A stretch of DNA of 63,736 nucleotides, counting the filler, from Hyphochytrium catenoides (Eukaryota; Protista; Hyphochytriomycota): the NCBI GenBank assembly GCA_900088475.1. It is 12 parts of 12 records of this genome, joined end to end, with 100 filler letters (N's around TTAATTAATTAA, not from the genome) between each part and the next. Parts side by side here need not be neighbours in the genome. Positions count along the whole stretch, not along the records: positions 54,516 to 56,418 come from FLMG01000653.1; 11 more parts are not named here. One strand, 5' to 3'. Below are positions 11,825-56,418 of this stretch, in pieces. Numbering within the stretch: position 1 is the stretch's first letter; the number at the start of each line of letters is the position of its first letter. The position numbers and the translations under genes were made by a program. The notes under the pieces were generated by a model, which had not been told where the DNA came from, searched no databases, and saw nothing but the letters and a program-made list of their open reading frames with translations.

Positions 11825-11924
11825 NNNNNNNNNNNNNNNNNNNNNNNNNNNNNNNNNNNNNNNNNNNNTTAATTAATTAANNNNNNNNNNNNNNNNNNNN
11901 NNNNNNNNNNNNNNNNNNNNNNNN
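11825..11924. other. Artificial contig linker (Ns-TTAATTAATTAA-Ns); first of 11
   Basis: The same 100-nt six-frame-stop linker also occurs at 18703-18802, 27060-27159, 40406-40505, 50623-50722, 54416-54515, 56419-56518, 58195-58294, 59862-59961, 61146-61245 and 62327-62426. A plain N gap lies at about 47921-47979. Confidence 0.98.
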
Positions 11925-12055
11925 AAGCGAGAGAGACTTGATCAAGGAGTCATGAGAAGCGAGAGAGACTTGATCAAGGAGTCATGAAAAGCGAGAGAGA
12001 CACTGGGTCAAGGAGTCATGAGAAGCGAGAGAGACACTTGGCCAAGGAGTCATGA
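11925..12055. repeat. Tandem repeat, ~32-34 bp unit, ~4 copies
   Basis: Unit approximately GAAGCGAGAGAGACTTGATCAAGGAGTCATGA. Confidence 0.9.
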
Positions 12056-54515: not shown

Positions 54516-56418
54516 TCAGCAAACATTGAGTTCCGGATACGGTAAGTTACTAGCTCACCAGCCCGAGCAGGTTGACCTGAAGTCAGATGTATAAGCGCTA
54601 ATAAAAGTTTTGTTGCCTCCTCCGCCTTCTTTAGGAACTCTTGAGCGCCAGTTTTGTTGATTAGCAAGCCTTGTTGAGCACTACTCCCACTAGAAGCATC
54701 TGCTAATGACATTGCCAAACAGCCAGCAGCAGTGTGGCCACTTTTGGCCAAGCTACACACCTTCTTGATAAAGGCGGCAGGATCCCACCGGTTCCGAGCA
54801 TCGGTGAGAAACAGTATCCCCCATTGTACTCCTGTCGGTTGTCCAACCAGCCAGTAAATGGAATAGGACTTGGCTTACAACTGATATTGAGAAGAAGGTC
54901 GTGATGGATAACCTTGTGGCAAGCTTTCAGGATCGATTTCACTAATCCGCGTAGTCCGTCTAGAGTCACTCTCTGTCCATTTACCATCAGCGCATCAAAG
55001 ACTGGCTCTCTCCTCGCGTAGGGCTCCAACCAAGTGATGTTCGGTAGACGAGGGGCTTGAAAGCAGTAGCTGCTGGCCAACCGCATCAGATTTATTAGAT
55101 GAGAAAATGGAGTGTTGGGTCCCAGTCTTAGATAACGTAACACATCTAGGTCATGACGCTCTGGCATGTCAACCCCTAGGGTTATTTTAAGGCCAATTGC
55201 ACAGCGTGCAACATATTGCAGCATGGCGATAAGCGGCGTAACTCGATGTATCCGTGCAAAGCTAAAGTCGTTGGAAGAGTGGTTAGAGCGCTCAAGGGTA
55301 CAGAAGAGTAAGAACTGCACCACGGGGAAGGACTCTGGTCTGCTCCTCAGCTCTGCCTCCACAGCGAAAGAAGCGAACAGCAACTTGTGCACCTTGGTGG
55401 CTAGAGACTCTAATTCATCTTCAGACCTCAGCCCATCCCACAATTGACTAGCCAAAGGTTCCAGAACTCTTATATGGCTTAGACTGAAGCCGCTTCTGAT
55501 TCTGGAGTGAGTGTCGTCGTCGTCGACGAGCAAGAGAACACGCAGTATAAAGGAGATCAGTCTAATCCCTGTCCGCATGTATTTTCTTTTTGAACTCTCT
55601 TCCTGTAAAAGCCGAAATGGCTCGACATTGAGCTCAGAGGGAGAGGTGGAGTTTATATGCTGTCTCAGGAGGTAGTTCCTACCAATTGCAGTTTCCGACG
55701 TCCTGAAAAAGAGCTCAAAGGCTTCACTCAACCTTAAGAGCTCTTCTGGATCCCCTTGTTGGACATCAGGAGTACTGCAAGCCCAAAGTAGGCTTGGAAA
55801 ACTCTTATCTTGTACCAGGACAATCCACTCTGACGCTGCGTGGAGGAAATCCGACGTTAATCGTTGCTCTACATTACTAGTTATGAGAGGAGGTTCATCC
55901 CTATTAAGGAAGTTGCTGCACTCTGGTCCGCTACTTATAACCGCCTTCAGCACACCATTGACGAGTTGGGAGTTAATGGTCGATGGAGTAGTATCATGCG
56001 GGGGCCTCACGCTATGGGAACCATCTGCTACAACTTCATAGTACTTTGTCCTGTTGCCCCTCCTGACCGTCTGAATTTGGCAAGGCTCAGGGGGGGTGAA
56101 GGATCCTCCCCCGTTCTGGATGGGCACATGCGCATATGGGAGAGCATTGTCTTACGCTGGACTGAATAGTGACATCTCCCTGAGTTGTGGCAGGCGGTGC
56201 AGCGCCATCCAGCGTAAACTGGAAGGCCAAGGATAGGCGCAATGGGCTGCAAAGAGTGAGACAGTCTCGGTATTAGCTTCAGCTCAGGCGTCCTGTTACA
56301 AAGATGGTGTGACAGTGAAGTCGAACTCTACTGCGATGCAAGCTTCGCGGACTTGATTGAAGTGTTCTAGGGTAAGTGGAGCTTGTCCCTTGCAATCACG
56401 GACATGCTTTCTGAGGGC
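54516..56418 (-). mobile_element. DUF3505 + 'GQPAR' element resembling fungal telomere-linked RecQ helicase-like proteins; frameshifted, both ends truncated
   Basis: ALRKHVRDC...PILGLPVYAGWRCTAC...TMLSHMR...CQIQT...KYYEV (DUF3505-like), FRLLQEESSKRKY, VTPLIAMLQYVAR, TPFSHLINL, LLALIHLTSGQPARAGELVTYRIRN. Frame changes near 56300, 56095 and 54760. Confidence 0.72.

Follow-up and report, generated by a model that had tools for sequence, protein, structure and literature searches.

Telomere-linked helicase (TLH) genes have been on record from the ends of fungal chromosomes since the late 1990s. Their products have two C2H2 motifs, RecQ motifs and, immediately before the helicase, a conserved 'TLH domain' of ~250 residues. 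They occur in several fungi as well as in the choanoflagellate Monosiga brevicollis, and the function of the TLH domain was unexplained as of the 2024 preprint describing it (10.1101/2024.02.27.582403). Examples are Tlh1 and Tlh2 of S. pombe, TLH1 of Magnaporthe oryzae, UTASa of Ustilago, BcTLH of Botrytis, and the genes of Metarhizium, Fusarium oxysporum and M. brevicollis. TLH genes are multicopy and subtelomeric, with 14 copies in one strain of Botrytis cinerea and zero in two others (10.1101/2022.03.07.483234). Truncated and mutated TLH paralogues are common (10.1101/2024.02.27.582403; 10.1101/2022.03.07.483234), and proteins with DUF3505 plus DEAD have been recorded close to Fusarium subtelomeres (10.1101/2023.02.05.527183). 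Here we describe a 1.9 kb, intragenic piece (positions 54516-56418, contig FLMG01000653.1) of a 63,736-nucleotide stretch, the window, from the Hyphochytrium catenoides assembly GCA_900088475.1. An earlier note made from the sequence, the original prediction, had tentatively assigned it to a poorly described class of elements. Judged by its sequence, the piece belongs to the TLH family, whose proteins are already known (10.1101/2024.02.27.582403), and the locus is a new, frame-disrupted, divergent copy within that family. From motif order and structure modelling in full-length relatives we conclude that TLH-type proteins carry a predicted tyrosine-recombinase catalytic domain, divergent and complete, before the helicase.

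An exhaustive HMMER (phmmer) search of 1.84 billion protein representatives returned 26 relatives (best E 6e-12, 25-34% identity). A word-index protein search with the longest reading frame of the piece, a 474-codon open reading frame (ORF), gave nothing in the range of 260-830 aa, and with residues 590-900 of one relative (P0011) it gave 4 proteins only; this type of search is weak here, as sequence divergence within the family leaves too few 5-mers in common. An exact-protein look-up of the 474-codon ORF returned no record. Twelve of the relatives are long (1193-1957 aa). Pfam matched OrsD (formerly DUF3505) in 11 of these, six times above the gathering score, and found DEAD and Helicase_C in 10 of the 12, ~750 aa past OrsD, while the ~750 aa in between received no Pfam annotation. 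The order in the relatives is OrsD, a middle region, ~250 aa and a RecQ helicase, the helicase being of RecQ type by its matches to RECQL5 (9e-61), BLM (1e-55) and E. coli RecQ (1e-52). The expectation that the motif series of the piece belongs to multicopy fungal proteins with a RecQ domain was borne out by these relatives. Those with a taxon name are all Agaricomycete (Marasmius, Leucoagaricus, annotated as 'ATP-dependent DNA helicase tlh2', Leucocoprinus and Coprinopsis); the closest matches to the piece come from metagenome or read-archive assemblies.

The piece was compared with a family profile built from the N-terminal ~600 residues of 10 full-length relatives. Coding sense was found on the minus strand only, both by translation and by ORF calls, and all features given below lie on this strand. 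The three frames of the piece were searched as separate stretches, without joining them into one protein. Frame 1 (56378-56130) matched profile positions 36-111 with E 2.8e-5, frame 0 (56088-54805) positions 126-523 with E 9e-52, and frame 2 (54679-54527) positions 557-607 with E 2.4e-13. Because the profile matches the three frames in order, the piece is one gene crossing frame changes and not three chance ORFs. The frames used contain zero stop codons across 1.9 kb, and the GC content of ~0.49 is even along the piece.

In frame 2, the stretch between the FLTDARN motif and the piece edge (54518-54811; profile positions 555-607, E 7e-15) takes in the last part of the middle region and the first part of the recombinase-like TLH domain. 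It is collinear with 16 relatives, and the frame 2 matches start 60-100 residues past the end of the middle-region match in the same proteins. Within this stretch lies box I of the tyrosine-recombinase-like domain, LLALIHLTSGQPARAGELVTYRIRN (54604-54530; profile E 2.4e-13 to 7e-15), at the piece edge where it had originally been noticed. The first catalytic Arg falls within GQPAR (54577-54563). Five of the five family-invariant residues (G, P, R, E and N, each invariant in 18/18 relatives) are kept in the piece, which ends ~15 residues past the first catalytic Arg, the rest of the domain lying past the edge.

The relatives show what follows. In their alignment the box G.P.R..E is succeeded by a beta-hairpin motif Y.K(T/G)R...G..R.IPRFLP, by YRH.A.AF and by QA.HS..TA...YA, a set of ordered motifs that spans ~230 aa past box I in the full-length proteins. 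With the His of HxxR as the one exception, the relatives keep the catalytic residues in order (Arg I in 18/18, Lys in 18/18, Arg II in 14/15, His in 14/14 and Tyr in 14/14); the piece carries Arg I alone. For a sub-region of P0011 Pfam gave a match to PF00589 Phage_integrase (model positions 22-170 of 172, E 2.5e-4, 21.3 bits), and for four other sub-regions none.

To obtain the fold we modelled residues 558-918 of the relative P0001 with AlphaFold2 (AF2), using an 18-sequence alignment; the model had a pLDDT of 76.8 and a pTM of 0.80. In a wide VIA structure search of 48,161 chains, which is independent of Foldseek, the best match was XerA with Z 10.3 and an rmsd of 3.1 over 159 residues, followed by Cre (9.2), XerH (8.9), XerD (8.4) and topoisomerase IB (7.8). 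Further matches included Tn1549 Int, IntI, Flp, Ndc10, SSV1 and lambda Int. Among the 48,161 chains, the first 29 all have the tyrosine-recombinase/topoisomerase-IB fold, and unrelated chains appear from Z ~4; the predicted fold of P0001 558-918 is thus that of the catalytic domain. The Foldseek comparison with Cre/XerD-type folds that had been proposed for this locus gave a top 22 of PDB matches that are all tyrosine recombinases or relatives. In the ESM Atlas the domain lies among unnamed fungal clusters from Ascomycota and Basidiomycota, with PF00589, at a low score, as the sole named family; this fits a domain that databases have left without annotation. The suggestion that G..R..E is the first catalytic-Arg box of a tyrosine recombinase, and that full-length homologues should show the corresponding fold, is therefore upheld by the relatives in ordered motifs, PF00589 match and modelled fold alike. 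We equate the published TLH domain with this recombinase-like domain, an equation that rests on the position and size given in the published description.

Compared with known systems, the relatives resemble the prokaryotic and phage tyrosine recombinases (XerA, XerC, XerD, XerH, Cre and lambda Int; PF00589) in their catalytic fold, with Z from 8.4 to 10.3, and in the order of their motifs: G.P.R..E, the beta-hairpin K, the R-H box and H-S..T....Y. They differ in that the PF00589 score stays below the cut-off, the His of HxxR is not kept, and the recombinase domain is fused to upstream zinc fingers and a downstream RecQ helicase. Cryptons and the Starship 'captain' genes (DUF3435) are similar in that they, too, are tyrosine-recombinase genes of eukaryotes, mostly fungi, and sit in DNA that is multicopy or mobile. 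To our knowledge they are without a RecQ helicase and not telomere-linked, and Pfam gave no match to DUF3435 or to the Crypton-derived DUF3504, either in five sub-regions (E up to 10) or in 12 whole proteins (E up to 0.01). Ndc10 of CBF3 and the Crypton-derived domains of QRICH1/ZMYM share the fold within a eukaryotic chromosomal protein (Z 5.1-5.8). As far as we know these domains have lost their catalytic residues, unlike the TLH family, which retains them. A full-text literature search, the founding TLH-domain paper excepted, found no paper in which tyrosine recombinases or integrases are connected with TLH proteins or with their TLH domain, and the recombinase reading of the TLH domain is likely, though not proven, to be new.

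With the TLH proteins the family of the piece shares two N-terminal C2H2 motifs, a conserved block and then RecQ, as well as relatives that are telomere-adjacent and multicopy. Unlike these, the piece consists of the N-terminal part only, is frame-disrupted and is only 21-27% identical to each of its relatives; its comparison with the canonical ascomycete TLH proteins was by published description. Regarding the features of the family, the C2H2 pair has profile support for the second finger only, the first being at or beyond the piece edge. The family-specific region is present in the right order (E 9e-52 for the middle region, 2.4e-13 for box I), and the RecQ domain, found in 10 of the 12 long relatives, would lie past the edge.

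Two one-base frame changes are confirmed in the piece. The change from frame 1 to frame 0 lies within 56130-56088, flanked by profile positions 111 and 126. With 14 codons for 15 profile positions this interval has no room for an intron; two homopolymers fall within it, G5 at 56112-56108 and C7 at 56096-56090. The change from frame 0 to frame 2 at 54813-54812 consists of two bases in place of one codon. It sits between the Tyr codon (end 54814) and the Phe codon (start 54811) of a GY[S/C]F motif, whose Y48 and F50 are invariant in alignment A2, and falls at TGTTTC, away from any long homopolymer. Since the profile positions are continuous across each of the two changes, introns are excluded at both, in line with the lack of evident introns first reported. 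Of the approximately three frameshifts reported along with it, these two stand, whereas the third, a shift near 56300 from frame 0 to frame 1, is no more than probable. It is read from a 40-codon open stretch in frame 0 that runs from 56299 to the piece edge at 56418, seen by translation; the stretch has no Pfam match and reached only E 0.36 with the family profile, without a real alignment. LRKHVRDC in this stretch is possibly the end of the first C2H2 finger. Upstream of 56330 frame 1 has stops. As an alternative to this frame change we considered a 53-nt GT...AG intron at 56245-56297, which has a CTAAT branch-like site and a pyrimidine tract and resembles a small fungal-type intron; it was rejected, as its excision gives the wrong zinc-finger frame. 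Other introns near 56300 are unsupported and would require a poor donor or a length of 34 nt.

Our best explanation, which we hold with considerable confidence, is that the ~630 codons of the piece form the 5' part of a TLH-type gene encoding a zinc finger, a helical region, a tyrosine-recombinase-like domain and then RecQ. In such a protein DNA would be bound by the zinc fingers and by the helical region, which is possibly core-binding-like, and the recombinase domain would cut and rejoin DNA via a 3'-phosphotyrosine link. The RecQ motor would unwind or branch-migrate the resulting joint molecules. A multicopy subtelomeric gene could thereby behave as a selfish element, recombining and spreading from one chromosome end to another. 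That the TLH domain is a working tyrosine recombinase, and that TLH genes, the present copy among them, encode a machine of recombinase plus RecQ able to move or copy itself from one chromosome end to another, possibly beyond fungi, we propose tentatively, with a probability somewhat under even. Several points weigh against our best explanation. We know of no activity demonstrated for any TLH protein, spread among chromosome ends can be explained by ordinary subtelomeric recombination too, and the copy in the window is frame-disrupted. Of the recombinase boxes the piece includes box I alone; the remaining ones, like the helicase and any telomere, would lie past its edge. Among the relatives, the canonical HxxR box lacks a conserved His, and the PF00589 match, obtained for one of five sub-regions, did not reach the gathering score (21.3 bits against 27.1), which speaks for a divergent lineage and not for a curated member. 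The Foldseek matches, all of the right kind, have weak E-values of 0.035-1. Family profile A2 had no match among PDB sequences at E up to 10, and its hhalign comparison gave no significant match to lambda Int or P1 Cre; the non-significant Cre alignment does pair the box I Arg and Glu with R173 and E176 of Cre. The last two negatives are what one would expect if the G..R..E likeness to recombinases were a chance motif match. Yet the ordered motif set, the near-full-length PF00589 match and the clear fold match contradict chance, which we consider highly improbable. A different reading takes the fold as genuine and the domain as a non-catalytic DNA-binding module, so that TLH proteins would be host telomere-maintenance helicases and not mobile-element enzymes. 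Ndc10 (Z 5.6-5.8) and QRICH1 (Z 5.1), the precedents for this, are among the structural matches of the TLH domain and show that the recombinase fold can be domesticated; the unconserved HxxR His would fit as well, and published work sees a role for TLH proteins in maintaining telomeres (10.1101/2024.02.27.582403). On the other hand, nearly all members retain the nucleophile Tyr, the two Arg, the Lys of the hairpin and the His at pairwise identities of only ~21-25%, as an active site would lead one to expect, which argues against a domesticated, non-catalytic domain, and a copy number between 0 and 14 among strains is unlike that of an essential host gene (10.1101/2022.03.07.483234). We therefore regard the non-catalytic reading as rather unlikely.

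Two further questions concern the copy itself, namely its condition and its host. It is either a young pseudogene or an intact gene with assembly indel errors. If the frame changes were assembly or sequencing errors and the gene were intact in the organism, one would expect what is seen in part: stop-free frames over 1.9 kb, a single-base offset at each confirmed change, and one change in the interval with the G5 and C7 runs. Against errors speak the second change at TGTTTC, which has no long homopolymer, the region upstream of 56330, where frame 1 has stops and frame 0 is without profile support, and the frequency of truncated and mutated TLH paralogues (10.1101/2024.02.27.582403; 10.1101/2022.03.07.483234). 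An intact gene is thus plausible but clearly the lesser possibility. Regarding the host, the contig may be fungal, as a contaminant or because the genome itself is fungal, and then neither an unusual host range nor cross-kingdom transfer would be involved. Every taxon-named relative is indeed Agaricomycete, the nearest ESM Atlas clusters of the domain come from Ascomycota and Basidiomycota, and the contig is short, of multicopy type and has no host gene on it. The piece, however, has 21-27% identity with every relative, which is the family's own median pairwise identity, and the best of 1.84 billion representatives reaches 34% in a partial match. The middle-region tree is star-like, with the piece as a separate deep branch that has no well-supported sister. 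Such a tree is uninformative about the host; together with the low identity, the deep branch argues that the contig is not from a well-sampled fungus. Moreover, TLH genes are already present in the choanoflagellate Monosiga (10.1101/2024.02.27.582403), so that a non-fungal host would have a precedent. A fungal origin of the contig accordingly has a substantial chance, falling a little short of one half.

The piece alone is a modest result, one more damaged, very divergent TLH copy, and the point worth pursuing is the recombinase identity of the TLH domain. Should this domain be a tyrosine recombinase whose active site is intact, what TLH genes do becomes directly testable. TLH genes would then be seen no longer as a telomere-maintenance factor but as a possible selfish element that combines recombinase and helicase. 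This would also account for their presence or absence between strains and for their part in the reshuffling of subtelomeres in plant-pathogenic fungi. If they also move or copy themselves between chromosome ends, they would form a distinct class of telomere-targeting DNA element.

Upstream of the recombinase box the piece encodes a zinc finger and a helical region. The second C2H2-like zinc finger, GLPVYAGWRCTACHNSGRCHYSVQRKTMLSHMRMC (56243-56130, frame 1), corresponds to the C-terminal half of OrsD/DUF3505. It matched PF12013 OrsD at model positions 75-110 of 114 with E 6.5e-5 and 23.8 bits, which falls below the gathering score of 26.6, and the family profile with E 1.1e-6. The family-specific middle region (54805-56088, frame 0; profile positions 126-523, E 9e-52) is mostly alpha-helical. 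It lies within the 474-codon ORF (frame 0, 56127-54706), of which the helical part takes up ~430 codons and which has no Pfam or NCBIfam match. An AF2 model of this ORF was mostly helical (pLDDT 75, pTM 0.67). The zinc-binding DUF3505-like N-terminus and the long helical region of the original prediction were thus both recovered, the former with a Pfam score under the cut-off.

The same model provides a lead on the function of the middle region. In the wide VIA search, eight of its nine top matches were N-terminal domains of tyrosine recombinases or Ndc10. They cover chain residues ~1-110, with Z of 4.5-5.8, which is within the background for helical models. The corresponding part of the ORF (residues ~130-360, 55048-55740) is a candidate for an expanded core-binding (N-terminal) domain of a tyrosine recombinase; that the middle region includes a core-binding-like domain is a weak lead only, drawn from a predicted structure. 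Foldseek with the ORF model returned unrelated helical proteins only. Look-alikes of the ORF in the ESM Atlas, Nup192 and RICTOR, are generic helical-repeat proteins with low recognition and were not used.

Telomere repeats were absent from the piece itself (54516-56418), whereas in the relative on contig L001 the gene runs into (TTAGGG)n. This gene (P0002, L001:10001-11852) has a ~50-nt intron-like interruption in the beta-hairpin region, followed by boxes II and III (EYRQIATAF ... LQAGHVGRTVEKSYAV). It stops ~50 residues past the catalytic Tyr, directly at the (TTAGGG)n, and is a TLH copy truncated ahead of the helicase and capped by the telomere. On L005 a full-length gene (P0019, 1450 aa, L005:571-4923) points toward a (TTAGGG)n contig end at 11853-11966, with 6.9 kb in between that hold tiny ORFs only. 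On three metagenomic contigs (L003, L004 and L006) a TLH-type gene lies 0.1-2.8 kb from the contig end. No telomere repeats were found near these ends, whose position by the gene is as expected, since a repeated subtelomeric gene breaks assemblies.

Single relatives showed some peculiarities. The Leucoagaricus 'tlh2' protein (P0018, KXN84688.1) keeps box I and the hairpin Lys, while the alignment shows no recognisable boxes II and III; either the gene model is wrong (a missed intron) or the copy is degenerate. Two other relatives, P0013 and P0031 (NCBI MGH7974641.1 and MGH7955087.1), are deposited as proteins of metagenome-assembled genomes (MAGs) of '[bacterium]' and '[Gloeomargaritales cyanobacterium]'. 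Because of their zinc finger, recombinase-like and RecQ architecture and their fungal relatives, they look like eukaryotic contigs mis-binned into bacterial MAGs.

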